Part shown: positions 1-45,283 of the stretch, one piece after another
How positions within the stretch are numbered: the stretch's first letter is position 1
Layout: the number at the start of each line of letters is the position of its first letter
From: Macrostomum lignano
Lineage: Eukaryota
Length of the DNA: 64,000 nt
Reading direction: 5' to 3'
Assembly: GCA_002269645.1 (NCBI GenBank)
Contig: NIVC01000104.1
Location: 1 to 64,000, forward strand
The notes under the pieces: model-generated
Databases searched by the model: none
What the model was told of the DNA's origin: nothing
Seen by the model: only the letters and a program-made list of their open reading frames with translations
Made by a program: the position numbers and the translations under genes

Positions 1-484
1 ACTTGCCATCTTCCGCAGCTAGATCGGCTACTGTTTTGCACCTGTTGACTTCCGTATACACGCCTTTGATGGTTAGAAGCCGCTTGAGCTGCTCCAGTCG
101 GTTCGCCTTGTAAGCGTCCAACACGATGGGATCAAAATCGCTGGTTGTTGCCGCGGTCGATCGTTCGACGGAAACTCGGAAAGTTTCTTCCTACCGCTGC
201 GGATGACGGCGCGGCACCAGCCGGAAAAGGCGCTGCCGGGACTCGAGAAGTCGGCCTAGACGACGACAAAGGCGCCCCGGCGCCACCTCCAGCCGTCGAA
301 AAGTTTTCAAACCGTCGGATTCGCCATTGCAACGGCGCTGAACCGACCGGTAAAAATTTTGGCCTCCGTGGAGGACATTCAGTTGAGTTCGTCGACTCGG
401 TTGGTCAAAATCGTGGCGCTCTCGAGACACCTGGCGCGAGTACTGAAACCGTTGCTGCTCGCTGCTGATGTTGAACCCAGACAT
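1..484 (-). pseudogene. 5' exon of a second ankyrin-TRPM-like paralogue, interrupted by an in-frame TAG; the gene runs off the window's left edge
   Basis: The frame of ORF 191..484 (MSGFNISSEQQR...) continues past TAG at 191-193 into ...IVLDAYKANRLEQLKRLLTIKGVYTEVNRCKTVADLAAEDGK. This aligns with ...LIDESKFDRLIEHLKLRGTYSSIVGNRTVGDLAAEKGN of the gene at 3501-8107, at a similar distance from the ATG. Pseudogene status is uncertain; a small intron or a sequence error is also possible. Confidence 0.6.
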
Positions 485-1664
485 GCCGGATGTCAGTTAA
501 ATTAAACAATCAACTGTGTGTTAGTTGGCATATTGACTAACTGTTTTTAAACACTTGTTGTAGCTAACTGCCAGTGATCCAGTGACCATGCAGTGCTACA
601 GTAGCTGCTGATAAAGAACTGTTTTATGGCTCACTCAGAGTCAGTAGTGCATGCAGCAGACGTTCATTAACACGAACGAGTCGGTCGCAGCTCGCGACGC
701 GATAAGAAAGAATTACATGCGCTGCGCGCACAAGAGTTCACACGGCTTTGCTTCGTACAGAAAGCAGCTGGATCGTTAAATAAGGCTTTTTCGTGTATTT
801 CTGCAGAGGAAGGAGTGGCCGGGGCAGCCCAACCTCTCCGCCTTGCCCTCTCTCTCTGCAAGGCAGTCTTTACTGCTTACACCCAGTGAGTCAGTCGCCG
901 CCTCCAGCGCGTACACTCCCATGCACCTCTGTCCGCCTCTATCCCCCCCCCCTACCGCACAGGGCTAGAGAAAAACGCCAAGGGGACGAGAAACGGGACT
1001 ATTTAATTGGTGCCTCTAGGCCAGTCTAGGGTTTTATGGCATTGGGGTGACAGGCTGTGCAGCAGAATGTACTGCATTAGGGATTTTGTCAATTGTTTTA
1101 CCTGTTCCGTCGGATGATCAAGGGATTGCATTCAGCAGAGGTTGCTTTGGACTGAAGCTTTTCATCTTCCGGGCCACGTGCGGGGTTTCTTTAGTCAACT
1201 TCAGGTAAAAAAAGCATCAATTAGTCCAAGTCTAAGTCTGCTATCTATACAAAGATGAACCCGGTCAGTTGGCGAACCTCAGAACTTTACATATACTCAA
1301 TTCAGGTATTTCTCTACAGTCTAGAGTCTGAGTATGCTGATTAAAATTGTTTGCATTTTGCCGGAAAGAAATTACGCCAAATCTACCCAGTGTGCAGGCA
1401 TCGCCAAGTAGTTAAATTCAACAAGCGAGAGGAGTCGGACAATTTTTACCTTGAATAATATTGGTTAAAAGTAAACGCGTTCGCGATTAAATAGCGTCGG
1501 AAAATTAATTCATTCAGTTTGGCAAAATTAGAAATTGATCAATTTAACAAAGAAAACCGCTTTTTTAGTAAGCAAAAAGTGTAAAAAGTAATTTGTGTAG
1601 CCAAAAATTTCTAGTAAAAAATGAGCAGGTAAAACGGCAAACTGGATTACTTCTGAAACAGCTA

Positions 1665-3353
1665 CAAGCGTAGGAACGGGGGACAGTGGGGCTATGGCCC
1701 CCCACTTTTTAAAATGTTTAAACGTAAAATGTAGACTTTTTGTTTATTTTTGTTTTTTGCTGCTTTGCATGAATGCATTTTGCTGCAGGGCGACAAAACA
1801 TAGCACCTGCGGCGCTAAAATGAGTGCCTGCGGCGCTAAAATGAGTGCCTGCGGCGCTAAAATGAGTGTCTGTGGCGCTAAAATGAGTGCCTGCGGTGCT
1901 TAAATGAGTGCCTGTGACGCTAAAATGAGTGCCTGCGGCGCTAAAATGAGTGCCTGCGGCGCTAAAATGAGTGCCTGCGGCGCTAAAATGAGTGCCTGTG
2001 GTGCTAAAATGAGTGCCTGCGGCGCTAAAATGAGTGTCTGTGGTGCTAAAATGAGTGTCTGTGGCGCTAAAATGAGTGTCTGTGGCGCTAAAATGAGTGC
2101 CTGCGGCGCTAAAATGAGTGCCTGCGGTGCTTAAATGAGTGCCTGTGGCGCTAAAATGAGTGCCTGCGGCGCTAAAATGAGTGCCTGCGGCGCTAAAATG
2201 AGTGCCTGTGGTGCTAAAATGAGTGCCTGCGGCGCTAAAATGAGTGTCTGTGGCGCTAATATGAGTGTCTGTGGCGCTAAAATGAGTGCCTGCGGCGCTA
2301 AAATGAGTGCCTGCGGCGCTAAAATGAGTGCCTGCGGCGCTAAAATGAGTGCCTGCGGTGCTTAAATGAGTGCCTGCGGCGCTAAAATGAGTGTCTGTGG
2401 TGCTAAAATGAGTGTCTGTGGCGCTAAAATGAGTGTCTGTGGCGCTAAAATGAGTGCCTGCGGCGCTAAAATGAGTGCCTGCGGTGCTTAAATGAGTGCC
2501 TGTGGCGCTAAAATGAGTGCCTGCGGCGCTAAAATGAGTGCCTGTGGTGCTAAAATGAGTGCCTGCGGCGCTAAAATGAGTGTCTGTGGCGCTAATATGA
2601 GTGTCTGTGGCGCTAAAATGAGTGCCTGCGGCGCTAAAATGAGTGCCTGCGGCGCTAAAATGAGTGCCTGCGGCGCTAAAATGAGTGCCTGCGGCGCTAA
2701 AATGAGTGCCTGCGGCGCTAAAATGAGTGTCTGTGGTGCTAAAATGAGTGTCTGTGGCGCTAAAATGAGTGTCTGTGGCGCTAAAATGAGTGCCTGCGGC
2801 GCTAAAATGAGTGCCTGCGGTGCTTAAATGAGTGCCTGTGGCGCTAAAATGAGTGCCTGCGGCGCTAAAATGAGTGCCTGCGGCGCTAAAATGAGTGCCT
2901 GTGGTGCTAAAATGAGTGCCTGCGGCGCTAAAATGAGTGCCTGCGGCGCTAAAATGAGTGCCTGCGGCGCTAAAATGAGCACCTGCGGCGCTAAAATGAG
3001 TGCCCGCGGTGCTAAAATGAGTGCCTGCGGTGCTAAAATGAGTGTCTGTGGCGCTAAAATGAGTGTCTGTGGCGCTAAAATGAGTGTCTGTGGCGCTAAA
3101 ATGAGTGTCTGTGGCGCTAAAATGAGTGTCTGTGGCGCTAAAATGAGTGTCTGTGGCGCTAAAATGAGCACCTGCGGCGCTTTATAAAATGAGTGCTGAC
3201 AAGACGGATTCTGAAAATAATCGGTACATGATAATGTGCATTTTCCATATATAAAAAATCTAACTCGACAGGGGCGTGCGCCCTGTGCGCACCCCCCAAA
3301 TCCGCCACTGAACCTGCCCCCCCCCCACTTTTTGAAACGTTCCTACGCCTATG
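1665..3353. mobile_element. Non-autonomous DNA transposon (MITE-like) with a 10-bp TSD and an internal minisatellite
   Basis: Terminal inverted repeats CAAGCGTAGGAACG (1665-1678) and CGTTCCTACGCCTATG (3338-3353). GAAACAGCTA is duplicated directly at 1655-1664 and 3354-3363. No transposase ORF. Confidence 0.75.
1803..3196. repeat. 21-bp minisatellite (GGCGCTAAAATGAGTGCCTGC), about 65 copies
   Basis: Direct tandem periodicity; source of the MSACGAK ORFs. Confidence 0.97.
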
Positions 3354-3500
3354 GAAACAGCTAAAAAATGGGTTAAGGAAGTATCACGCTGCCAAGTGTT
3401 AAAATTTGAGAATTGGCACAGCAGAAAAATACAGACATTTTTGCAAACAAAAATTAATTGGCCACTAAAAAAACTCGAAGAGCAACAATAAGAAGGGTTG

Positions 3501-6500
3501 CTAGCGCCACATGGTCTGCAGTCGCAGAGCCTGTCTCCATCTGGTCTGGGCGAGACTGGGCCTTGGCAGCCTTGTCCTCGGCAAATTGCCTAACAGAGTG
3601 TTGGCTGTGATGGCTCTCGGCGGGTCGCTGTCGCTGTCGCTGTCACCTTCGCTGCCGCGGTCGCTACCCGCCGGTTGCTGCTTCAGCTTTGTCAACTCGG
3701 ACTCGACAATTTTTCTCATCTTCATCAGCATCTTCTCGGCTTCGGTCTCCTGTTTCGGCAGACTCTGCTGCATCAGCCTCAGCCGGTTATTGCGCAGGCT
3801 GAGCGCTTGGAACAGCAGAAACTGCAGCACGACGCGGCGGCTAAAAACGGTCTCGACTTCGTTGACACAGCTGCAGAGGACGCATCTGGAATGCTGAGTC
3901 AGTCTCCGGAGAAGCCTGAGCAGCTTGTAGAATAGATCGAACACGTTGAGTGGCGGCGGAAGACTCGAACGAGTCTGGAACTCCATAACGAGATCGTGGC
4001 GTTCGAACTGCCACAGATCGGTGCTGCGCGAGTCGATGGTCTCGATTGTCTTGCTGAACATGGCGATGATGAGATTCAGCAGCAAGATCTCCGTGACGAT
4101 CACGTAGAGAGGCAGGATCAGGTAGGGCACCAGGTACCTGTTAGCAGGATTTTAGAATATTGGGTAAATAATCCTTAAACTAAACTCTGAAAATTCTAAA
4201 TATCCAGTGCCACCAACTCACCGTCCGATTTTGTGCGGACAGTTGCCTTCATTTAGAGTATAATTTTGGTACACATTTTCGCACGAATCGTCCCCAATAA
4301 TGGTATCCAGACTGTACTCCCCAACCATGCTGTAGAAGCAGATCTTGAGCATGCCCAGCAGCACGTGAGTACTGCTGATACGAGCCGAGTTCCAGGCCTT
4401 GTACCCGTTGGGGTACAGCAAGCTGTGCATCAGCACCCCGAATCCCAGGATGAAGATGAACAGAATCAATAGAAATGGCAGCAGATCCTTGGTGATCATC
4501 TGGGCGATCATTCTTAGCTTGGGCCCGAGATTCTCCAGCACATTCGAAATGTACAGCAGCCGAATCCAGTAGAGGGTGCAGCAGATGCCTGCAAGAAACA
4601 ATTAGCAGTTTCCTTTATATACTACTTATAAATAGAACGTTTTTTATCAGTAGTGAAATCAATTCATCTTTGTGGAGGTAGACATTGGTAGATTGTGTTT
4701 AATGGTTTTTTGAGTTTAACAATGGTAGATTGTGTCTATGGTTCTGTAGTCAGACAATGGTAGATTAAGTCTATGCTTTTGGATATAGAAAATGGTAGAT
4801 TGTGTCTATAGTTTTGGAGGTAGACAATGGTAGATTGTGTCTATGATTTTGGAGGTAGACAATGGTAGATTGTGTCTATAGTTTTGGAGGTAGACAATGG
4901 TAGATTGTGTCTATAGTTTTGGAGGTAGACAATGGTAGATTGTGTCTATGGTTTTGGAGGTAGACAATGGTAGATTGTGTCTATAGTTTTGGAGGTAGAC
5001 AATGGTAGATTGTGTCTATAGTTAAGAGTCAAACAATGATTGATTTTCTTACTAAGAAAAATTCTGGCTGAATACCAAGCCGAGTCCTCGAAGTCTCGCA
5101 TCATGTCGGACCACTCGGAGTTGTGCTTGATCTCTACCAGGCGAATCACAAAACCCGTCGCACCTGACAGCAGGGCTGACAAATCAATCACGTTCCACTT
5201 ACTATTGAAGTAGCTTTGAATGTCATTATGGACGATGTACTGCACCATTTCGCCCATCTCTTCCAGAAACAAGCCGCCAAGAATTAGGTAGACAATAATT
5301 TCAATGTTAGAGATTTCATATTTGAAATCTACGAGCAGGAAGTAGGACATCAGTCCGAGCAGTACAATATGCGAAGCGACGTGGTACCGAAACTTCACAC
5401 CCGGCGTACGATAGAAATTGATTAAAAGTTTGCTGAAGTGGCAAAAATAGTTTGATTCCGAATAGTTTAGCGTGCTCTGAGACTGGCAGTCTTGCTCATC
5501 GTGCCCAAAGTCCACAAGAGGAACTTGGTTGTCATTTTCTGCACCTGATGGTCTCATCAGGCTCGACCGCCTCCTGTGCGGTAAATAATTGCCAAACTGC
5601 TTCAACTCAACGCTTGGCCTAATCAGATTCTCTCCGTCGGTGCTGTCGGCAGTTTTGTCCGGTTCGACCGATTCTAAGGGCAGCAAGTGGAACTTGGCCG
5701 ACTTCTGAGCTGACTGACGGTCGCTGATGTACGGCCGCTCTTCGTGCTTCTGTCTCGCTACGACCTCTTTGCTATCGAAGTAGGACAGCAGAATGGGCAC
5801 AAAGATGTTCATCGGAATGGCGCCCATCCAGATCACGACTTCTCGAGTGACCGGACTCAGGTAGAGCAAGGAATCGAACCACAACTTGTCCAGAGCGTGT
5901 TGGCACAGCTCGCTCTGTAGGAACACTGCGCAACCGTTGGAAGCCGCCAGCCGAACGCACGAGACGCCGCCATAAGATTCCATCGGCCGCAGTAAGTAAT
6001 CCAGACTGACAGTCCGGTTGTAGGAGGTGTCAATTGTGTACGCCTTCTCTACCACTTTGCGAGCAAATCTTTCGCAGGTCAGCGCCATGTCTTCGACGTC
6101 CTCCTCATCAACCACAATGTCCTGGTTAGCCGGGAAAGTTCGCAGCACGCCGGCGCAGAACAGCGATAGCGGTACAACATCGAATTTTTCCTGCTGCAAT
6201 AGCAGTTCAGTAAGGCACAATCGGCCGGACAGAATCGACCACACGGGCAGAGTTCGAAAAGGATTTCGCATGTACGGACTGTCCGGGTTTGTTTCTTCGC
6301 AGTCTCCCTTCAGCCTGTAGCAGGACAACAGGTCGCCATAATATTCGGCCAATTTTTTATGATCAACAGCCTCATTTTCAACAAAGTTCGTCCGAAAATG
6401 CTTAATAATACCGTTCACCTCTCTCTCGGGGGCTTGCAGATAGAGCGAGTCGAGGTTTTTCTCTATCAATACGGAAACTTCAGACCAGAGCACCCCGCAC

Positions 6501-8107
6501 GTCATGATCCGTTCTAGGAGCATAGCATCCTCTCTGAACAGTACGTAGTGCACGATGTTTTCAACAATTTTAATGAGCACATCATCGTTATCAGCCTCGT
6601 GAATGATGTCGTGAATGTCTTCAGTCTGCAGCAGCTGCAGGATGACCTCGGTGAACTCGATCAAGTCAATCCGATCGTCGTCTCGCAACTTTTCACACAG
6701 GAGTTGCCTCTCGTCCGCGCTAATCTCCTTCATGTTGATGATGCAGGCTCGAAACTCGTTGTCCACGTTTGCTAGAAAGTCCAAATACTGGCCAAACTGC
6801 TGATTGAACGACAACTCCTTAAAACACTGGGCTCTCACGCCTTTCATTTTGATCACAGTATAGTAGTAAATGAAGTCGTTGAGCATCATGTGGTTGTTGA
6901 GCTCCAGAATGATGTCGATAACCGTCTTACCATTGTCAGCTGGTATGTCGACCAAAGCACCCGTGCACTTGGCGGTGAGGAGCAGCCGTACAATCTCTCG
7001 GTTCTGGTTGAGCACAGCAATGTGCAGGGCGGTTTTGCCTTCAAATCCTTGCATATTCAGCACCGGTTCCGTGATGTGCGGCATCAGTATTTTCACAACA
7101 ACTAGCGAGTCTTCAAGGCACGCTCTGTGCAGAGGCGAGTTGCCCTGCGCGTCAACAACGTTTAGACTGGCTCTGCAATGATCTGGGAAATGGACAAGCG
7201 GTAAGTTGTAGAAATTTCCGATTATAATGCTGGGAAATAGCCACTGTACAGGTACAGAGTAAGAGTACTGATTCAAAATACTAGTATATTATGTTCTTTT
7301 AAACATATATACCGGTACAGTAGGTACAGTATGAGCGTAATAAATCAGAGTTCAAGTAAGTGTCGCTTCTGGAACGGAAACTTGAAAGATTACTAAACAA
7401 CACTTACCCAGCAGAGTGTTAAGCAGTTTTGTATCAGCGATTGAGCAGGCCTGGTGCAGCGGAGTGTCCGACTGTCCTCTGCCGGACAGTGACGGCAGTG
7501 GCAAATCCGCTGAGGCTCCCAGTTCTATTAGCTTTGTGAGCGCGTCAAGCTGGCGCTTCTTAACGGCGTAGTGGAACGGCACCAAGCCGTCTTTGTTCCT
7601 CCGATCAAAATCGTAGGCCAAGCTCTCGTGCAGCCTGTCCAGCAACAGACAGTTGCCTTTCTCGGCGGCCAAGTCGCCAACAGTGCGGTTTCCAACTATG
7701 CTGGAATAGGTGCCGCGCAGCTTGAGGTGCTCAATCAGCCGGTCAAACTTCGACTCGTCGATTAGTCGCTTGAGCAAACTATCAGTCACAGGCAGCGAAG
7801 TTCCCTGCTGACTGTCAATGCTTGGCCGAGCCTGAGGCGACATCGACGCCGGTGAGGTTGGCGACGATGGAGCGTCGGCCACTGCAGACTCTCGTGCCAA
7901 AGGTTGCTCCGCCCTCAACGTCGTGAGCTCTCGGAGCCGACTCTTCGAACTGGTACTGGATATCGCTGTCTCCAGCACCTGGTCATTCCGGCTGCCCACT
8001 TCTCTACTTCTAAACAGCTGCTGCGACTGCTCCTGACGGCGCGCCTGAACAACTTGACGACGATTTCTCTGGTCGTCGCTACGCACGTGAAAATCGATGG
8101 TTTGCAT
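3501..8107 (-). CDS. TRPM-like cation channel with N-terminal ankyrin repeats (1277 aa, 4 exons)
   Basis: Exons complement(3501..4137, 4222..4588, 5053..7182, 7408..8107), all GT-AG with consistent phases 1,1,2 (3834 nt). About 6 ankyrin repeats (GLVPFHYA, DTPLHQA, GNSPLHRA, GKTALHIA). MHR4-like helices (PVWSILSGR...GGVSCVRLA...LDKLW). S4-S5 LGPKLRMIAQM, S6 ILLLNLIIAMF, TRP box WQFERHDLVMEFQTRSSLPPPL with TRPM-type spacing, and a short coiled coil. Confidence 0.92.
4676..5021. repeat. 35-bp minisatellite in TRPM-like intron 2
   Basis: Tandem ATGGTAGATTGTGTCTATAGTTTTGGAGGTAGACA, about 9-10 copies. Confidence 0.93.
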
Positions 8108-9511: not shown

Positions 9512-9800
<289 letters not shown>

Positions 9801-11389
9801 AGGCAGAAAAATGAACAGCACAGACTGTCATCCGCAGGCAGCGCCAGCAGCCAGTAGCCGCATCTCCACCCGGCCCTGCTTGCTGCCCGAGTTGCCGCCA
9901 GTCACGGCGGTGCAGTCGACGCCGCCGCAAAATGAGCCGCCGCCACCGCCGGCGTGGCCTGGGGCCATCCCGGCACCGCCGCCGCTGAAGCCGCCTCCGG
10001 CGCCAGCAGCACCTCCACTATTGTCGGCGTTTCCGCCGCCTCCTCCGCCGCCGAATCCGCCGTCTCCGGAGCTGCCACTGCCGGCTTGACCTCCCACCCA
10101 GCTCTGGTCGATGCCGCCGCCTCTCTCGCCGTCGCCCAGCCCTCGTCTGGCGTTGACAGCCCGGCCAAGCCAGCCGGCGCCGCAGCCACCGTGCTGATTA
10201 TTGCTCGGGGTTGCACTGGGATCGTTAAGTCCCGGCTTACCGTTGGCTCCACCGACGCCATTGTAGAGTTGATTAACGCCGAGTGAGCCGCTGCCATTCC
10301 CTCCGGACGATCCAATATTTCCTGCGGGAAGTTGCCGATGGCGTTGCGCCAGAGAACCCAGGCCATCCTGCAACTATTTTTTACGTAAACCTAAAATCTC
10401 TTAAAAGGTACAAAAGGATCAAGCCGAGTCGCGCATCCAAAGCCTGAAGTAAAAATCGGGCAGCAAAAGTCCAGGCACCATCGGATCCCACGGAAGCGCC
10501 GCCACCGCCACCGGCCGCCAGGTACAGCTGCCCGTCGCTCGCTCCGTACACGAAGCTGCCGCCGCCGCCGCCGCAGCCAGCCGTTGAGGGGGCTGCCGGG
10601 CCGCCTGCCTGACTGACCACGATCGACAGCCGCGACCCGCCAGTCAGGTTGAAGCTGCCGGCCGCTGAGGCGCCTCTGCCGCCTGCTTTACCATAGACAG
10701 CGTTGTCACCTCCGGCCGCTCCGAAGGCCTCGATGCGGTAGCAGCCGGTGATGTTGATCGTCAGGTGCTGGACGGACCCGTTTCGACCCGTGCTCGAGTC
10801 TGTGAGAAGTAATTTTATGACTTTGCAGGTTGAGAGTCCCAGACTCGTCTTGCACCCAATGGCGGTCCACCGAAGGGCTTGCACTCAAACAAAAACCCTA
10901 TGAACCTGGCTTCCATCCAGAGTGAGTTAGATGCATTTTGTTCTGACTTTGAAGCAATTTTAGAATTTCAAAAACGTTTAAAATATACCGGTAACTTCAG
11001 TGCGCTTACTGGACAGAACGACAGTGAGGTTCTTCAGCCGCCTCTGCTGCACGGTCTGCTCAAAATCGGCCACCTTCCACACCTGCAGCTCGCCAGTCGA
11101 GCTGTTGCCGAACCGCCTGGCTACGTGAGTGCCCGGCGGTCCCAGCTGCTTCGAGGCGTCATTGATGAAGAGCAGCTCGCAGATGCCGGACTTGCCGGAG
11201 CTGGAGGCGACGGCGTCGCAGTTTCTGGCTGAGCACTGCAGCAGGCAGTCGGTAGCTGAGCGCATGCGGCTCAGGAGGACGACCTCGCTGCTGGAGGCGT
11301 CCGTCAGCTCGACTGGCTGCTCAGAGGCGGTGAAGCTGATGGAATCGAGCTGCACTGCCACCGCTGGGAGCAGCACTGAAATGGTGGCG

Positions 11390-13745
<2,356 letters not shown>

Positions 13746-13752
13746 TTAAGGC

Positions 13753-13921
<169 letters not shown>

Positions 13922-24724: not shown

Positions 24725-25475
24725 TTCTGCCTTTTCCACTGGGCTAAGTTCGTATGAATGTCTGCAAGCGTTAGTATTTCTAAGACGTAGCTAGCTCTAT
24801 TTAAAGCGCGACACTGCTATCATATCTCTCTAGTTTTTTCTCTCGCTTCGACAATGCTCTTCTGCTTCTCGATGCAACATGCTGTTGCACTCCTGTCTGT
24901 CCCCCAGGAGAAATATGCGAGAGCTCGGCGTCAGTGCAATCTAGCAATCTCTTGCACAGCATTCACAGCGCTTACAGTAGAGGGCAAAATCCACCGTTCC
25001 CCCCTCTCTCTCTACTGCAGCAGTGCGTCTCTCTCGGCTGCCTCACACCTCGTGTCTCTCTTTTATTGTTGGCTAAATTTGATTCATCTGCGTTCTCTCT
25101 CTGAGTGCGGCGACGACAGGAGAGAGCAGACGGCCACGTTATAATTTAGGTTTCGTGCACGACAATTGGCTCTAGGGCTGGTCGTGAAAATCTGGATGAG
25201 AAATCCAGAGCTGATGCTTCACCCTGTGTGAGCTTGTGCCTGCGAACAGACCCTTTGAGCCCTTTTTGAGATGCCTTGAAACCTAACGATATCTTTCAGA
25301 CAATAATCTCACCATTCAATCTGTAATTATTCATTCATTTCTAGTTCCAGGTTCTGCTTCATTGAATTGTCTGGTTTCCTTTTGCATAAAAATTCAATAG
25401 AACAGCAGATTGCTGTCACGAAATGGCAAGAAATTGAATAGTAATCTTTTTCTCCCGCTTTGTGTATTGACAAAT

Positions 25476-28400
25476 GAGATGGCAGAGAGTGAGAGATGGC
25501 AGAGAGTGAGAGATGGCAGACAGTGAGAGATGGCAGACAGTGAGAGATGGCAGAGAGTGAGAGATGGCAGAGAGTGAGAGATGGCAGAGAGTGAGAGATG
25601 GCAGACAGTGAGAGATGGCAGAGAGTGAGAGATGGCAGAGAGTGGGAGATGGCAGACAGTGAGAGATGGCAGACAGTGAGAGATGGCAGAGAGTGAGAAA
25701 TGACAGTGAGTGAGAGATGGCAGTGAGTGAGAGATGGCAGTGAGTGAGAGATGGCAGTGAGTGAGAGATGGCAGTGAGTGAGAGATGGCAGTGAGTGAGA
25801 GATGGCAGAGAGTGAGAGATGACAGTGAGTGAGAGATGGCAGAGAGTGAGAGATGGCAGTGAGTGAGAGATGGCAGAGAGTGAGAGATGACAGTGAGTGA
25901 GAGATGGCAGACAGTGAGAGATGGCAGTGAGTGAGAGATGACAGTGAGTGAGAGATGGCAGTGAGTGAGAGATGGCAGAGAGTGAGAGATGACAGTGAGT
26001 GAGAGATGGCAGACAGTGAGCGATGGCAGTGAGTGAGAGATGACAGTGAGTGAGAGATGGCAGTGAGTGAGAGATGGCAGAGAGTGAGAGATGACAGTGA
26101 GTGAGAGATGGCAGTGAGTGAGAGATGGCAGTGAGTGAGAGATGGCAGTGAGTGAGAGATGGCAGAGAGTGAGAGATGACAGTGAGTGAGAGATGGCAGA
26201 GAGTGAGAGATGGCAGTGAGTGAGAGATGGCAGTGAGTGAGAGATGGCAGTGAGTGAGAGATGGCAGACAGTGAGAGATGGCAGTGAGTGAGAGATGGCA
26301 GACAGTGAGAGATGGCAGACAGTGAGAGATGGCAGACAGTGAGAGATGGCAGAGAGTGAGAGATGACAGACAGTGAGAGATGGCAGACAGTGAGAGATGG
26401 CAGACAGTGAGAGATGGCAGAGAGTGAGAGATGACAGTGAGTGAGAGATGACAGTGAGTGAAAGATGACAGTGAGTGAAAGATGACAGTGAGTGAAAGAT
26501 GACAGTGAGTGAGAGATGACAGAGAGTGAAAGATGACAGTGAGTGAGAGATGGCAGTGAGTGAGAGATGGCAGAGAGTGAGAGATGGCAGACAGTGAGAG
26601 ATGGCAGACAGTGAGAGATGGCAGAGAGTGAGAGATGGCAGAGAGTGAGAGATGGCAGACAGTGAGAGATGGCAGACAGTGAGAGATGGCAGAGAGTGAG
26701 AGATGGCAGAGAGTGAGAGATGGCAGACAGTGAGAGATGGCAGTGAGTGAGAAATGGCAGAGAGTGAGAGATGGCAGAGAGTGAGAGATGGCAGACAGTG
26801 AGAGATGGCAGTGAGTGAGAGATGGCAGACAGTGAGAGATGGCAGAGAGTGAGAGATGGCAGACAGTGAGAGATGGCAGTGAGTGAGAGATGGCAGTGAG
26901 TGAGAGATGGCAGACAGTGAGAGATGGCAGAGAGTGAGAGATGGCAGACAGTGAGAGATGACAGTGAGTGAGAGATGGCAGACAGTGAGAGATGGCAGAC
27001 AGTGAGAGATGGCAGACAGTGAGAGATGACAGTGAGTGAGAGATGGCAGACAGTGAGAGATGGCAGACAGTGAGAGATGGCAGAGAGTGAGAGATGGCAG
27101 ACAGTGAGAGATGGCAGTGAGTGAGAGATGGCAGTGAGTGAGAGATGGCAGACAGTGAGAGATGACAGTGAGTGAGAGATGGCAGACAGTGAGAGATGAC
27201 AGTGAGTGAGAGATGGCAGAGAGTGAGAGATGACAGTGAGTGAGAGATGGCAGTGAGTGAGAGATGGCAGTGAGTGAGAGATGGCAGAGAGTGAGAGATG
27301 GCAGACATTGAGAGATGACAGTGAGTGAGAGATGGCAGTGAGTGAGAGATGACAGTGAGTGAGAGATGGCAGACAGTGAGAGATGGCAGAGAGTGAGAGA
27401 TGGCAGACAGTGAGAGATGGCAGAGAGTGAGAGATGGCAGAGAGTGAGAGATGGCAGAGAGTGAGAGATGGCAGTGAGTGAGAGATGGCAGTAAGTGAGA
27501 GATGGCAGAGAGTGAGAGATGACAGTGAGTGAGAGATGGCAGACAGTGAGAGATGGCAGAGAGTGAGAGATGGCAGAGAGTGAGAGATGGCAGACAGTGA
27601 GAGATGGCAGACAGTGAGAGATGACAGTGAGTGAGAGATGGCAGTGAGTGAGAGATGACAGTGAGTGAGAGATGGCAGTGAGTGAGAGATGGCAGAGAGT
27701 GAGAGATGGCAGACAGTGAGAGATGACAGTGAGTGAGAGATGGCAGAGAGTGAGAGATGACAGTGAGTGAGAGATGGCAGTGAGTGAGAGATGGCAGAGA
27801 GTGAGAGATGGCAGACAGTGAGAGATGACAGTGAGTGAGAGATGGCAGTGAGTGAGAGATGGCAGAGAGTGAGAGATGACAGTGAGTGAGAGATGGCAGA
27901 GAGTGAGAGATGACAGTGAGTGAGAGATGGCAGTGAGTGAGAGATGGCAGAGAGTGAGAGATGGCAGAGAGTGAGAGATGACAGTGAGTGAGAGATGGCA
28001 GAGAGTGAGAGATGACAGTGAGTGAGAGATGACAGTGAGTGAGAGATGACAGTGAGTGAGAGATGGCAGAGAGTGAGAGATGACAGTGAGTGAGAGATGG
28101 CAGTGAGTGAGAGATGGCAGAGAGTGAGAGATGGCAGACAGTGAGAGATGGCAGTGAGTGAGAGATGACAGTGAGTGAGAGATGGCAGAGAGTGAGAGAT
28201 GGCAGACTGTGAGAGATGGCAGTGAGTGAGAGATGACAGTGAGTGAGAGATGGCAGTGAGTGAGAGATGGCAGAGAGTGAGAGATGGCAGACAGTGAGAG
28301 ATGGCAGAGAGTGAGAGATGGCAGTGAGTGAGAGATGGCAGAGAGTGAAAGATGACAGTGAGTGAGAGATGGCAGTGAGTGAGAGATGGCAGTGAGTGAG

Positions 28401-28548
28401 AGATGACAGTGAGTGAGAGATGGCAGACAGTGAGAGATGACAGTGAGTGAGAGATGGCAGAGAGTGAGAAATGACAGTGAGTGAGAGATGACAGTGAGTG
28501 AGAGATGACAGTGAGTGAGGGATGACAGAGAGTGAGAGATGACAGAGT
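25476..28548. repeat. 17-bp satellite (GAGATG[G/A]CAG[AG/TG/AC]AGTGA), about 3.1 kb, about 180 copies
   Basis: Direct periodicity with three interspersed variants; source of the ~1050-aa spurious ORFs. Confidence 0.98.
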
Positions 28549-28719
28549 GAAGCCACGGTGACATCCAGGAAGCTAAGACAACTCATTTTTGTCTGTAGGA
28601 TGTTCTCGCACGAAAGAAATTGATTATACATGTAGGTGCAGCAAACAAAGCATTAAAGCTTTTAATGACTTTTTATTTGTCGAGCATTTACCCCAAATAG
28701 CAGAGTAAGTTTTCTGTAA

Positions 28720-33059
<4,340 letters not shown>

Positions 33060-37000: not shown

Positions 37001-40000
37001 GAGGGGCAGGGAGAGGGGCAGGGAGAGGGGCAGGGAGAGGGGCAGGGAGAGGGGCAGGGAGAGGGGCAGGGAGAGGGGCAGGGAGAGGGGCAGGGAGAGG
37101 GGCAGGGAGAGGGGCAGGGAGAGGGGCAGGGAGAGGGGCAGGGAGAGGGGCAGGGAGAGGGGCAGGGAGAGGGGCAGGGAGAGGGCAGGGAGAGGGGCAG
37201 GGAGAGGGCCCGGGAGAGGGCCCGGGAGAGGGGCAGGGAGAGGGGCAGAGAGAGGGCCAGGGAGAGGGCCAGGGAGAGGGGCAGGGAGAGGGGCAGGGAG
37301 AGGGGCAAGGAGAGGGGCAGGGAGAGGGGCAGGGAGAGGGGCAGGGAGAGGGGCAGGGAGAGGGGCAGGGAGAGGGGCAGGGAGAGGGGCAGGGAGAGGG
37401 CCAGGGAGAGTGACTTAACAAGCTTTCCAAAACCACCTCAGATCGCACTGGAGCTAGAAGCTGCTTTCCTAGCCCAGAACATGACGTCTTACCAGAAGAC
37501 GATTTTCAATTTGGATGCAACAAATGCGATTAGTCGACTATTGGTAATTTACTAAAGTCTTATGCCTTATAATCTGTGTCGAATTATATTGTTAACCGAG
37601 ATTTATCGCACATGTTTTAATTTTTAATTCAAGATGAACGACATTCGAATATTCGTTGTGGTTAGAAGCATAGGTGAGGAGGCACCCGACAAAAGATTCG
37701 ACTGTCTGGTGAGTAACGGGTGAAGATGGGTTATGGCAGGGGTCGGCGAACTGCGGCCCGCAAAGCCTCTCTATCCGGACCTCGGGTCCTTTGAGACTTC
37801 ACAATAGCAATCCGGCCCGTTCAATGTTTATCTCTCTCCTCTCCTCTCCTCTCCTCTCCTCTCCTCTGTCTCGTCTCGTCTCGTCTCGTCTCGTCTCCTC
37901 TCCTCTCCTCTCCTCTCCTCTCGTCTCCTCTCCTCTCCTCTCCTCTCCTCTCGTCTCCTCTCTTATCCTCTCCTCTCCTCTCCTCTCCTCTCCTCTCGTC
38001 TCCTCTCCTCTCCTCTCCTCTCCTCTCCTCTCCTCTCCTCTCCTCTCCTCTCCTCTCCTCTCCTCTCCTCTCCTCTCCTCTCGTCTCCTCTCCTCTCCTC
38101 TCCTCTCCTCTCCTCTCCTCTCGTCTCCTCTCCTCTCGTCTCCTCTCCTCTCGTCTCCTCTCCTCTCCTCTCCTCTCGTCTCCTCTCTTATCCTCTCCTC
38201 TCCTCTCCTCTCTCTCCTCTCCTCTCCTCTCATCTCCTCTCCTCTCCTCTCCTCTTCTCTCCTCTCCTCTCCTCTCCTCTCGTCTCGTCTCGTCTCCTCT
38301 CCTCTCCTCTCCTCTCCTCTCGCCTCCTCTCCTCTCCTCTCCTCTCCTCTCCTCTCCTCTCCTCTCCTCTCGTCTCGTCTCGTCTCCTCTCCTCTCCTCT
38401 CCTCTCCTCTCGCCTCCTCTCCTCTCCTCTCCTCTCCTCTCCTCTCCTCTCCTCTCCTCTCCTCTCCTCTCGTCTCGTCTCCTCTCCTCTCCTCTTCTAT
38501 TCATTTAATGTTATCTTGCCAGTTTCCATTTTTGAGCGCTTCATTTCAGATCAAGCAGCTGGGCGCCTACGGTCCCAAGTACCAGTGGATCCAAGTTGGA
38601 TTCCCATTCACAACGCGACTGAGACCTGTTGAAGCCTGCTCAGACGGTGAACGCGCGATTGCGATGGAGGGATCGCTGGAATTTGACAGCGATGTCAACG
38701 ACCCTGCTGTAGTTCATCAACCGGACATCACTGGGAGGGTTAGTAGTTTCAATAATTAGAACTGTTAAAAGTACAAGCAAATTGGGTATTAAATTAGCCT
38801 GGTATCTTGGAGGACGTCCTGCTCTTTGTGCCGGACGTTGCGAGTTTGTGCCGAAGAGATGCCAGACAAGGACGAAACTTCCGCGATGTCAGCGGTCTGG
38901 ACGTTCGAGACGCTGTGGCGTCTTCGACAATTTTACATCAACTTTGTTGAAAACACCGTACGAACCCAAAGACCTTTAAGATCCCCTAAGACCCTCAAGA
39001 TCCCCCAAGACCCACAAGATCACATAAGACCCTCAAGATCCCCTAAGACCCTCAAGATCCCCTAAGACCCTCAAGATCCCCTAAGACCCTCAAGATCCCC
39101 TAAGACCCTCAAGATCCCCTAAGACCCTCAAGATCCCCCAAGACCCTCAAGATCCCTTAAGACCCTCAAGATCCCCCAAGACCCTCAAGATCCCCTAAGA
39201 CCCTCAAGATCCCCTAAGACCCTCAAGATCCCCTAAGACCCTCAAGATCCCCTAAGACCCTCAAGATCCCCTAAGACCCACAAGATCCTCTAAGACCCTC
39301 AAGATCCCCTAAGACCCTCAAGATCCCCCAAGACCCACAAGATCACATAAGACCCTCAAGATCCCCTAAGACCCTCAAGATCCCCTAAGACCCTCAAGAT
39401 CCCCCAAGACCCTCAAAATCATGCACCTAAGACCCTCAAGATCCCCTAAGATGCTTAAGATCCCATAGACAATTACGAACGCTCTAGAACTCGTAGAACC
39501 CCTAAATCACATGTAATAATCTAACCTCATTGACCTTAACTAGAACTACCTGACCTCACTGATCCCCCCATCGAACCAGACCCTAGACGAGAGCTTCTCG
39601 GATTTTCTAGCCCAGTACAAGGACGTCGCGGTGAACCCTCGGCCGACAAGCATCGTAGGCTTTGCTCTGCGCTTCGACGCTGTGATGACGGCGGCTTTGG
39701 CCATCAATGCCACGCTATTGGAATCCGAAGGGAACTACACCGATCAGCTGTCCAATCAGCAGTTGGGCAACACGTCGTTTAAATGGCGTCTGTTTAAAAA
39801 CATTCTTGCCTTGGACTATCCGGGACTTTCGGTTAGTAACTTATAGGTATGCTTGTAGCACACTTAATCGTAAAATATTGCAAGCAATAAAACAAGTTAA
39901 TTTTCAATTGCAACCACTAAGGGTCAGGTCAAGTTTGACTCCAGAGGCGACAGGTCATCCCGAATTTATATCTACCAAATTCGTGGTAAGTATCTATTTG

Positions 40001-43000: not shown

Positions 43001-45283
43001 TTAGATCCTAGATACCACATGTTAGATCCTATATACCACATTTTAGATCCTAGATACTGCATGTTAGATCCTAGATACCACATGTTAGATCATAGATACC
43101 ATATGTTAGATCCTTGATACCACACGTTAGATCCATATAGATCCACATGTGTAGATACCACATTTACAACTTTGGCTTGGACTTATAAAATGAAAATAAA
43201 ATGAAAATAAACTGAAAATGAAACTCTCACTACACAACCATAAATCAGATAAGATACAACAGGGTAAACAGGTTGTGCAAGCAAAGTTAAAGCAATGGTA
43301 ATCTTCACTGCCCCAGATCAAATTCAATTATTGATTTTTACTTTCTCCGCAGTGTATTTTTTTCTAGGAAATTGGCCTTCAAAAAAAGTACACGATCTTT
43401 GAGTTCTAAGCGATCCTTTTACGCTATAGTGGTCCTTGGATTTTTTGTCATACACTTACTGGTAGAAATTATTTTAATTTGCTTGTTAAGTTTTTTATTG
43501 ACTCATTTGTGCATTAGAGCCTCGATGTAACTGCATTTTGTGCCTTTCTTCTACATTGATCTAATCCTCACAACTGGTACTAAGCCGCACTAAAGTTCTC
43601 CCTCTAATCCTTTAATTTCCCGAAAATCCCTAAAAGTTTTACTAATGCCCTAACGGGTCTATGAGAATTTCCCGCAGGAATTTTTCCCGCCGAGCTTTCC
43701 CCGCAGCGAGTTTTTCCCGCAGCGAGTCTCATCTCCTCTCCTCTCCTCTCCTCTCCTCTCCTCTCCTCTCCTCTCCTCTCCTCTCCTCTCCTCTCCTCTC
43801 CTCTCCTCTCCTCTCCTCTCCTCTCCTCTCCTCTCCTCTCCTCTCCTCTCTCCTCTCCTCTCCTCTCCTCTCCTCTCCTCTCCTCTCCTCTCCTCTCCTC
43901 TCCTCTCCTCTCCTCTCGTCTCCTCTCCTCTCCTCTCGTCTCCTCTCCTCTCCTCTCCTCTACTCTCCTCTCCTCTCGTCTCCTCTCCTCTCCTCTCCTC
44001 TCCTCTCCTCTCCTCTCCTCTCGTCTCCTCTCCTCTCCTCTCCTCTCCTCTCCTCTCCTCTCCTCTCCTCTCCTCTCCTCTCCTCTCCTCTCCTCTCCTC
44101 TCGTCTCCTCTCCTCTCCTCTCGTCTCCTCTCCTCTCCTCTCCTCTCCTCTCCTCTCCTCTCCTCTCCTCTCCTCTCCTCTCCTCTCCTCTCCTCTCCTC
44201 TCCTCTCCTCTCCTCTCCTCTCGTCTCCTCTCCTCTCCTCTCCTCTCCTCTCCTCTCCTCTCCTCTCCTCTCGTCTCGTCTCCTCTCCTCTCGTCTCCTC
44301 TCCTCTCCTCTCGTCTCCTCTCCTCTCCTCTCCTCTCCTCTCCTCTCGTCTCCTCTCCTCTCCTCTCCTCTCCTCTCCTCTCCTCTCCTCTCCTCTCGTC
44401 TCCTCTCCTCTCCTCTCCTCTCCTCTCCTCTCCTCTCGTCTCCTCTCCTCTCCTCTCCTCTCCTCTCCTCTCCTCTCCTCTCCTCTCCTCTCCTCTCCTC
44501 TCCTCTCGTCTCCTCTCCTCTCCTCTCCTCTCCTCTCCTCTCCTCTCCTCTCCTCTCCTCTCCTCTCCTCTCCTCTCCTCTCCTCTCGTCTCCTCTCCTC
44601 TCCTCTCCTCTCCTCTCCTCTCCTCTCCTCTCCTCTCCTCTCCTCTCCTCTACTCTCCTCTCCTCTCCTCTCGTCTCCTCTCCTCTCCTCTCGTCTCCTC
44701 TCCTCTCCTCTCCTCTCCTCTCCTCTCCTCTCGTCTCCTCTCCTCTCCTCTCCTCTCCTCTCCTCTCCTCTCCTCTCCTCTCGTCTCCTCTCCTCTCCTC
44801 TCCTCTCCTCTCCTCTCGTCTCCTCTCCTCTCCTCTCCTCTCCTCTCCTCTCCTCTCCTCTCCTCTCCTCTCCTCTCCTCTCCTCTCGTCTCCTCTCCTC
44901 TCCTCTCCTCTCCTCTCCTCTCCTCTCCTCTCCTCTCCTCTCCTCTCCTCTCCTCTCCTCTTCTCTCGTCTCGTCTCAAATCGTCGACGAAAATTTGCCG
45001 CACGAGATTTTCCCGCACGAGATTCTCCCGCAGCGAGTTTTTACCGCAGCGAGAGTTTCCCGCAGGAAAGTTCCCCGTCGAGATTTTCCTGCCGAGCTTT
45101 TACCGCCGAGATTTTCCCGCACGAATTTTCCCCGCACAGACTTTTTCCAGCAGAAAGATTTTCCCGCAAGAAATTTCTCGTGATTGCCTGTTTACCTTAA
45201 GAAAGAAATTTTAAAAAGGAAAGCCATTAGCAGAGACGCGATTTTCTTTGATAAATTCGACACAGGCAGCCAGCCAGGCAGGC

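Follow-up and report, generated by a model that had tools for sequence, protein, structure and literature searches.

An ankyrin-bearing TRPM-like channel gene of the free-living flatworm Macrostomum lignano and its probable kinship with the parasite drug target TRPM_MCLZ

A stretch of 64,000 nucleotides of the Macrostomum lignano genome (GCA_002269645.1, contig NIVC01000104.1, positions 1 to 64,000), referred to here as the window, was analyzed for the ion-channel gene located near its left end. The coding sequence of this gene, a TRPM-like channel with ankyrin repeats, occupies positions 3501–8107 of the minus strand in four exons (8107–7408, 7182–5053, 4588–4222, and 4137–3501, the last including the stop codon), and its spliced product of 1277 residues and its span agree exactly with those given in an earlier note on this DNA. 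All introns are GT-AG, the reading frame is continuous across the four exons of the spliced model, and the exon boundaries fall at conserved positions in the alignment with paralogs. Neither a frameshift nor a premature stop is present, and the family alignment indicates that all family-invariant residues are kept. The four-exon model is backed by conservation rather than by transcripts, and the locus reads as a real, intact ion-channel gene of this free-living flatworm.

The combination of ankyrin repeats with a channel domain could in principle be produced by joining two genes or by annotation. However, exon 2 is a 2.1-kb unbroken open reading frame (ORF) that runs from three of the ankyrin repeats through the linker and the TRPM2-like domain into the first transmembrane (TM) helices, and the ORF at 4946–7276, which ends within S3/S4, yields both Ank and TRPM2-like matches by itself. 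Since part of the ankyrin array is encoded in the same single exon as the beginning of the channel, the fusion is not an artifact of this kind. A second contig of the same assembly, NIVC01001714.1, matches window positions 1–5171 at 96–99% identity and ends inside the channel gene, which explains why the gene's own product is missing from the protein collection. Comparison of the window with this contig revealed homopolymer indels in the neighboring gene; single-base errors are therefore possible elsewhere, though the frame of the channel gene is intact. Intron 2 contains a 35-bp tandem repeat in 10 copies (4673–5023).

Domains were called by a Pfam scan of the 1277-residue product (cut-off of 27 bits for PF25508), and residues 110–1230 were modeled with AlphaFold 2 (AF2) from a 17-sequence family alignment (mean predicted local distance difference test, pLDDT, 74.9; predicted template modeling score, pTM, 0.69). 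All features of the protein are given in order from the N-terminus and lie on the minus strand. The first 109 residues (7781–8107) are of low complexity and, judging from sequence composition, probably disordered; they lie outside the AF2 model, and the segment preceding the ankyrin repeats is similarly variable in orthologs and paralogs. Six ankyrin repeats follow (residues ~143–344; 6851–7681, spanning intron 1 at 7407–7183), detected by Pfam as Ank_2, Ank_4, Ank, and Ank_3 matches over residues 147–324 (E-values of 1e-15 to 1e-19) and by AF2 as six helix-pair repeats with pLDDT of 85–93. A linker that is helical in the model (residues 345–487; 6422–6850) leads to a TRPM2-like, MHR4-type helical domain (residues 488–716; 5735–6421), supported by PF25508 (TRPM2-like; residues 488–651, 34.2 bits, profile positions 94–251), by hhalign, and by phmmer alignment of the MHR4 region to nvTRPM2 and TRPM8. 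The MHR3 part (residues 345–534) was unrecognizable in a profile comparison with canonical MHR3 (E-value of 0.07).

The channel proper is preceded by a disordered insert (residues 717–807; 5462–5734) with pLDDT of ~30 that is not conserved among paralogs. The pre-S1 helix and the S1–S4 voltage-sensor-like domain (residues 809–960; 4539–5458, spanning intron 2 at 5052–4589) were delimited by the Ion_trans match (residues 840–1104), AF2 helices, and mapping of TRPM_MCLZ residues, and they include H834, H838, L871, E875, E878, N897, D900, R953, and Y956. S5, the pore loop, and S6 (residues 979–1093; 4056–4484, spanning intron 3 at 4221–4138) were placed by alignment to the TRPM pore (YWQIYGE), and the corresponding pore segment here reads F-Y-S-M-V-G-E-Y at residues 1028–1035. 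The TRP helix (residues 1097–1121; 3972–4046), read directly from the sequence, carries the motif WQFERHDLVMEFQTRSSLPPP, in which W1108-x-F-x-R (here W1108QFER) and the terminal LPPP are invariant in paralogs and orthologs. At the C-terminal end, AF2 shows helices (residues 1166–1219; 3678–3839) comprising a 'VLQFLLFQA.SLRN.R' segment, a motif found in both the Macrostomum and TRPM_MCLZ clades, and a long terminal helix; these are likely the rib and pole helices of a tetramer. The linker and MHR4-type domain are all-helical in that model, and S1–S6, the TRP helix, and the C-terminal helices are present. Pfam and AF2 together bear out the ~6 ankyrin repeats, helical linker, MHR4-like block, and six TM helices described in the earlier note, and its TRP box with TRPM spacing followed by LPPP is found in the sequence as described.

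The same note had reported that SLOG, NUDT9-H, and kinase domains are absent, and every line of evidence agrees with it. The Pfam scan of the 1277-residue product returned no LSDAT/SLOG (PF18139, PF18171), NUDIX, or kinase match, and a SLOG profile built from the homolog set had no match in the protein. The AF2 model of residues 110–1230 has an all-helical N-terminus and contains no alpha/beta domain, which excludes a cryptic SLOG fold, and six SLOG regions, of which two come from M. lignano TRPMs, were used as tblastn queries and revealed no SLOG-like coding sequence in the whole 64-kb window (best E-value of 0.5). These results also bear on the suggestion that the gene model is incomplete, i.e., that upstream exons encoding SLOG were missed in what is a canonical TRPM gene. 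The low complexity of the first 109 residues would fit such a model, and the DNA alone would permit a spliced 5′ exon. However, an in-frame stop lies 19 codons upstream of the ATG, neither the 56 kb upstream nor the rest of the window holds SLOG-like coding sequence, and the nearby upstream "ORFs" are GATA microsatellite. In addition, about a dozen paralogs, as well as orthologs from at least nine other flatworm species, all independently annotated, begin with ankyrin repeats and lack SLOG; every retrieved sequence has a short variable N-terminus followed by these repeats. The domain order would still differ from that of canonical TRPMs if a SLOG domain preceded the six ankyrin repeats. A hidden upstream SLOG exon, which the earlier note had named as grounds for withdrawing its reading, was not found, and the missed-exon explanation is highly improbable.

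To which TRP family the channel core belongs was examined with the ankyrin repeats removed. A phmmer search of all PDB chains gave 173 matches, the best 60 of which were all TRPM, with no TRPC, TRPA, or TRPV chain among them; the best match was nvTRPM2, a Nematostella TRPM2-like channel (3e-34), followed by TRPM8, TRPM2, TRPM3, TRPM1, TRPM5, TRPM4, and TRPM7, and the alignments extend from MHR4 through the TRP box. An hhalign comparison of the Macrostomum-clade profile with a profile of SLOG-bearing TRPMs gave an E-value of 1.6e-73 over residues 535–1142 and nothing N-terminal of residue 535. With the TM region alone, TRPN references scored 26–38 bits, compared to 109 bits as the median of all remaining hits, most of them SLOG-bearing TRPMs. 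Foldseek comparison of the AF2 model with PDB placed TRPM2, TRPM8, TRPM4, TRPM3, and TRPM5 on top and NOMPC at rank 6, the latter because of its ankyrin repeats. Thus, the channel core is TRPM-type by sequence and predicted fold, as had been claimed, and the TM domain does not group with TRPC or TRPN. An ankyrin-type TRP of the TRPN, TRPA, TRPC, or TRPV lineage with a superficially TRPM-like channel would account for the N-terminal ankyrin repeats typical of those families, for the rank of NOMPC, and for the match to TRPN1 in the first full-length search, which was driven by its ankyrin repeats. Set against the PDB matches and TM-region scores, as well as the presence of an MHR4/PF25508 domain and of a TRPM-type LPPP after the TRP box, the probability of that explanation is negligible.

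The relatives of this TRPM-type channel were collected by an exhaustive HMMER search with a profile of the nonankyrin part against 1.8 billion representatives, which returned 2659 hits; this search was relied on in place of a word-indexed search with a 4-sequence profile, which had returned only the M. lignano paralog P0001. The top scorers are M. lignano paralogs (P0002, P0003, P0111, P0112, P0114, P0115, P0117, P0125, and P0127) that, together with P0001 and the window gene, represent roughly a dozen gene groups of this species. The next scorers are from Opisthorchis viverrini (P0116), Dicrocoelium dendriticum (P0123), Fasciolopsis buski (P0275, annotated 'TRPM7'), Schistocephalus solidus (P0121, also 'TRPM7'), and Protopolystoma xenopodis (P0149), and a further search added Heterobilharzia americana, Paragonimus, Echinostoma, Mesocestoides, Anoplocephala, Hymenolepis, and Cichlidogyrus. 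The nearest relatives beyond M. lignano are therefore ankyrin-bearing "TRPM-like" channels of flukes, tapeworms, and monogeneans. The best 150 of the 2659 hits were surveyed with ankyrin and SLOG profiles, and selected ones were also scanned with Pfam. Among these 150, the proteins with ankyrin repeats but without SLOG were all among the higher scorers and, where the source organism was readable, all from flatworms, while most of the remaining full-length hits were SLOG-bearing. One further sequence, P0119 (L002, Logan contig DRR639838), is an intronless protein of 1072 residues with ankyrin and Ion_trans domains that groups with the TRPM_MCLZ clade at 99% bootstrap and is only 33% identical to the Dicrocoelium ortholog; its source may be another free-living or early-branching flatworm.

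The parasite members of this set correspond to a channel that has already been described. Smp_333650, or TRPM_MCLZ, is a schistosome channel activated by (S)-meclonazepam with a half-maximal effective concentration of ~1 uM; it raises cytosolic Ca2+ in HEK293 cells, and its N-terminus was reported to contain 'multiple ankyrin-like repeats' (Park et al., J Biol Chem 2024; PMC10788528). Sprague et al. (2024) noted that TRPM_MCLZ lacks the NH2-terminal MHR1/2 or SLOG and has ankyrin-repeat-like modules instead, along with a short C-terminus without an enzyme domain (PMC11731825). The group was named 'TRPM-like' by Rohr et al. (2026), who found it in all parasitic flatworms (63 orthologs) as one gene per parasite, with three exons and the whole channel in exon 3; this channel exon is duplicated (3a/3b) in Opisthorchis, Clonorchis, and Paragonimus (PMC12861061). 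A 2026 review called the N-terminal ankyrin domains of TRPM_MCLZ 'unusual' (PMC12923046).

Two observations identify the neodermatan ankyrin clade retrieved here as TRPM_MCLZ. The residues published for Sm.TRPM_MCLZ (H827, H831, Y864, E868, R943, H946, and Y1117, with an S4 variant of H, Y, or F at 946; PMC12861061) are found in the Heterobilharzia protein P0298 (1382 residues) as H831, H835, Y868, E872, R947, Y950, and the TRP residue Y1120, i.e., at a constant offset of +4 that becomes +3 after the pore loop, and the pore Y1042 of P0298 corresponds to the published Y1038. In addition, the O. viverrini protein P0116 (1906 residues) contains two complete channel domains in series, matching the published 3a/3b duplication, and apparently merges both alternative exons in one annotation. 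On the strength of this residue map and doubled channel, the clade can be equated with TRPM_MCLZ at the sequence level. The architecture that the earlier note took to be novel is thus one already published for TRPM_MCLZ (PMC11731825; PMC10788528; PMC12861061; PMC12923046), and the protein probably falls within a described ankyrin-TRPM group of the same architecture, an outcome that the note itself had named as refuting its reading. The window gene adds a family member rather than a new kind of channel.

How closely the Macrostomum genes are related to TRPM_MCLZ was assessed from profiles, trees, and diagnostic residues. An hhalign comparison of the two clades gave an E-value of 1.4e-88 over 992 columns that begin in the ankyrin repeats and reach the C-terminal helices. 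Two neighbor-joining (NJ) trees were built, one from the TM region only (309 columns, 131 taxa, rooted on TRPN) and one from MHR4, TM, and TRP segments (459 columns, 121 taxa). The second contains a split with exactly the 17 ankyrin-bearing taxa, and in the first the ankyrin clade is joined by six N-terminally truncated fragments and by no SLOG-bearing protein. Consensus residues of four groups (the Macrostomum clade, the TRPM_MCLZ clade, flatworm SLOG-bearing TRPMs, and other TRPMs) were also compared as a quartet: 10 columns support Macrostomum plus TRPM_MCLZ, among them those of the drug-pocket S1 histidine and the pore 'FYS', and 0 and 0 columns support the two alternatives. The 'FYS' tyrosine of the window protein aligns with the published pore residue Y1038 of Sm.TRPM_MCLZ. 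These results suggest that the window gene is probably a member of the flatworm ankyrin-bearing TRPM-like family and a Macrostomum-specific co-ortholog of TRPM_MCLZ. Strict orthology to Smp_333650 was considered and rejected, since the gene belongs to a Macrostomum-specific paralog clade and is at best co-orthologous.

Several observations weigh against this assignment. Bootstrap values of the joint ankyrin-only clade are 46% (TM) and 36–38% (MHR4, TM, and TRP), compared to 99–100% for each subclade, and the trees are simple distance trees built without TRPS or TRPC references. With the TM region, flatworm SLOG-bearing TRPMs score 166–172 bits and TRPM_MCLZ orthologs 143–162 bits, a slight difference that is consistent with a fast-evolving parasite branch. 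The linker-containing slice (residues 345–534) has no significant profile similarity to its TRPM_MCLZ counterpart (E-value of 0.37), so that N-terminal homology beyond generic ankyrin repeats is unproven. In TRPM_MCLZ, the whole channel lies in the last of three exons, versus exons 2–4 of a four-exon gene here; the three-exon structure may be a trait of the parasite orthologs that does not define the wider family. Finally, the link to Smp_333650 passes through the residue map of a schistosomatid ortholog.

The weak joint-clade bootstrap, the linkers without detectable homology, the differing exon structures, and the marginally closer TM region of the flatworm SLOG-bearing TRPMs would all be expected if the Macrostomum genes had exchanged MHR1/2 for ankyrin repeats independently of the neodermatan TRPM_MCLZ, in which case the window gene would work like TRPM_MCLZ without being its co-ortholog. 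However, the point-estimate trees from two column sets both group the ankyrin-bearing taxa with no SLOG-bearing protein inside, none of the consensus columns favors another grouping, the domain order is identical, a C-terminal enzyme domain is absent in both clades, and all members come from one phylum. Convergence is accordingly considered unlikely, and co-orthology with TRPM_MCLZ is the preferred explanation.

Given this relationship, the gene probably encodes one subunit of a tetrameric, nonselective cation channel of the flatworm-specific ankyrin-bearing 'TRPM-like' group. By analogy with the characterized relative and with TRPM structures, gating would be TRPM-like and act through the S1–S4 pocket and the TRP helix. 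Residues E875, E878, N897, and D900 occupy the four S2/S3 positions that bind Ca2+ in TRPM2/4/5/8, making Ca2+ modulation of the channel plausible. In the pore, V-G-E1034 takes the place of the canonical TRPM consensus Y-G-E. Divalent-permeable TRPMs typically have a glutamate in the filter, and this resemblance suggests that the channel may be permeable to Ca2+. Without MHR1/2, the N-terminal ADP-ribose/nucleotide site of canonical TRPMs would be unusable, and the six-repeat ankyrin array presumably provides surfaces for assembly or partner binding instead. Among the six residues published as contacting meclonazepam, four are retained in the window protein (H834, H838, E875, and R953), while two are changed (L871 for Y864 and H1113 for Y1117), and the S4 variant residue is Y956. 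Tyrosine at this S4 position is the low-sensitivity state for meclonazepam. From these three positions, weak or no sensitivity of the Macrostomum channel to meclonazepam is predicted.

Adjacent to the channel gene, at 2–484 on the minus strand, lies exon 1 of a tandem paralog, P0001, which was located by tblastn with residues 1–162 of that protein and by nucleotide alignment and which runs off the left edge of the window. P0001 (1358 residues) is annotated on contig NIVC01001714.1 of GCA_002269645.1 and is 58% identical to the window protein. Of the local duplication proposed in the earlier note, the tandem neighbor (exon 1 at 484–2) stands, but tblastn found no second full channel copy in the window. 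The window copy of this exon differs from contig NIVC01001714.1 by three single-base deletions in short C/G runs, which shift the frame locally between residues ~46 and ~108 and introduce a stop there, the original frame resuming downstream; this pattern has the look of homopolymer errors in long reads rather than of a true pseudogene. The genome of M. lignano has been described as partly duplicated. The number of paralogs and the frameshift and stop in the neighbor's exon could also be taken to indicate that the window gene is itself a nonfunctional recent duplicate, a pseudogene in the making within a large redundant family. That is very unlikely for a gene with no frameshift or premature stop, canonical splice sites throughout, and every family-invariant residue in place, next to a neighbor whose three homopolymer differences look like sequencing errors.

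Much of the intergenic space between the two channel genes is filled by a 21-bp tandem repeat (1806–3181; ~65 copies, 93% matches) that gives spurious ORFs on both strands, such as 'MSACGAK' repeats. Upstream of the channel gene, microsatellites of GACA and GATA units reach 292 copies, and a 271-bp repeat has 4.4 copies; these arrays lie at 9512–9807, 11390–12558, 12543–13745, and 13753–13921. The upstream ORFs at 9828–12638 were considered as 5′ exons and rejected as translations of the GATA/GACA microsatellites; the 'ORFs' of 435–543 residues at 10978–12638 are a translated GATA array. No second TRP gene was found among the other large ORFs of the window. A minus-strand ORF pair at 25394–30921 (1071 and 733 residues) has a weak IDM1_C match only, proline-rich plus-strand ORFs at 43661–45214 and 37791–38759 have sub-threshold extensin-like matches, and strong GC-skew swings occur between 26–32 kb and 38–46 kb.

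The position of the ankyrin-only group beside flatworm SLOG-bearing TRPMs in the NJ trees also bears on the chimeric or ancestral-type architecture proposed in the earlier note: it is not demonstrably ancestral, and this placement suggests instead a derived, flatworm-specific state. Within the group that is sister to the ankyrin-only clade in the NJ tree, P0137 (M. lignano BOX15_Mlig003066) and P0140 (Clonorchis sinensis 'TRPM2') carry an N-terminal Ank_2 match (32.9 bits; cut-off 27.3) before an intact LSDAT/SLOG domain, followed in Pfam by a TRPM2-like domain and Ion_trans, and they may represent an intermediate architecture of a gain-then-loss domain replacement. Their position next to the ankyrin-only clade suggests that ankyrin repeats were gained before SLOG was lost. 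As a tentative scenario, which we regard as possible but doubtful, ankyrin repeats were acquired first, a single deletion or replacement of MHR1/2–MHR3 followed at the base of Rhabditophora, and the dozen-fold Macrostomum expansion came later. If so, the Macrostomum genes would document how a TRPM channel lost its defining melastatin (SLOG) domain, a dated domain replacement in TRP evolution missed by two large TRPM/TRPS phylogenies. Those phylogenies describe TRPM and TRPS as devoid of ankyrin repeats, and Platyhelminthes were unsampled in them (PMC7306681; PMC13143021), a taxon gap that the sequences assembled here fill. The scenario would also set a dozen genes in free-living Macrostomum against the single drug-target gene of the parasites and make M. 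lignano a tractable, nonparasitic set of natural variants of the meclonazepam-target channel.

Flatworm TRPMs are reportedly anthelmintic targets, and schistosomes have two validated TRP drug targets, TRPM_MCLZ being one. The same ankyrin-for-SLOG architecture occurs in M. lignano, a free-living flatworm kept in the laboratory, in a family that has expanded and is duplicating in tandem. No description of this Macrostomum expansion was found in the searchable literature text, the parasitology papers covering parasites only. RNA interference and transgenesis exist for M. lignano, which offers an accessible system for asking what ankyrin-bearing TRPM-like channels sense, and the natural pocket variants L871, Y956, and H1113 are available for structure-activity work.

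Among known systems, canonical TRPMs (nvTRPM2, 6co7; TRPM8; TRPM2; and TRPM3) are the best PDB matches by sequence and fold and share with the window protein the MHR4-type domain, pre-S1, S1–S6, the TRP box, LPPP, and the S2/S3 acidic/polar quartet E, E, N, and D; in contrast to them, the window protein lacks MHR1/2 (SLOG) and a NUDT9-H or kinase domain, has no recognizable MHR3, and carries six N-terminal ankyrin repeats. In TRPN/NOMPC (5vkq), ankyrin repeats likewise precede a TRP channel that has a TRP helix, but ~9–11 ankyrin segments are detected in TRPN1 sequences versus six here, TRPN lacks the MHR4-type domain, and its TM region is the low-scoring one described above. NOMPC itself has 29 ankyrin repeats. 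TRPS (soromelastatin, ced-11-like) resembles the window protein in being a divergent TRPM sister lineage of invertebrates, and it has been cited alongside TRPM_MCLZ as an atypical 'TRPM-like' clade (PMC12923046). TRPS, however, is reported to have SLOG and Nudix domains, no ankyrin repeats, and a divergent TRP box 2 (PMC7306681), and the window protein, with ankyrin repeats and without SLOG and Nudix in Pfam, is set apart from it by architecture. Contrary to the statement in the earlier note that ankyrin repeats occur in some TRPS, Himmel et al. (2020) did not detect any (PMC7306681).

The flatworm TRPMs with both ankyrin and SLOG (P0137 and P0140) share the flatworm TRPM-type core and an ankyrin match at the extreme N-terminus, but they retain LSDAT/SLOG and a full TRPM2-like domain in proteins of ~1700–1800 residues. 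The closest counterpart is TRPM_MCLZ, which is similarly flatworm-restricted and has N-terminal ankyrin repeats, no MHR1/2-SLOG, no C-terminal enzyme domain, TRPM-type S1–S6, a TRP helix with LPPP, and a conserved C-terminal 'VL.F.L.Q.F.L' helix, along with the shared derived residues S1 H-x3-H, pore 'FYS', and S4 R-x-x-[H/Y]. The two differ in overall sequence (~21–23% identity), in the pore (V-G-E-Y in the window protein versus F-E-V-S in TRPM_MCLZ), and in copy number, being multi-copy in M. lignano versus one gene described per parasite (PMC12861061).

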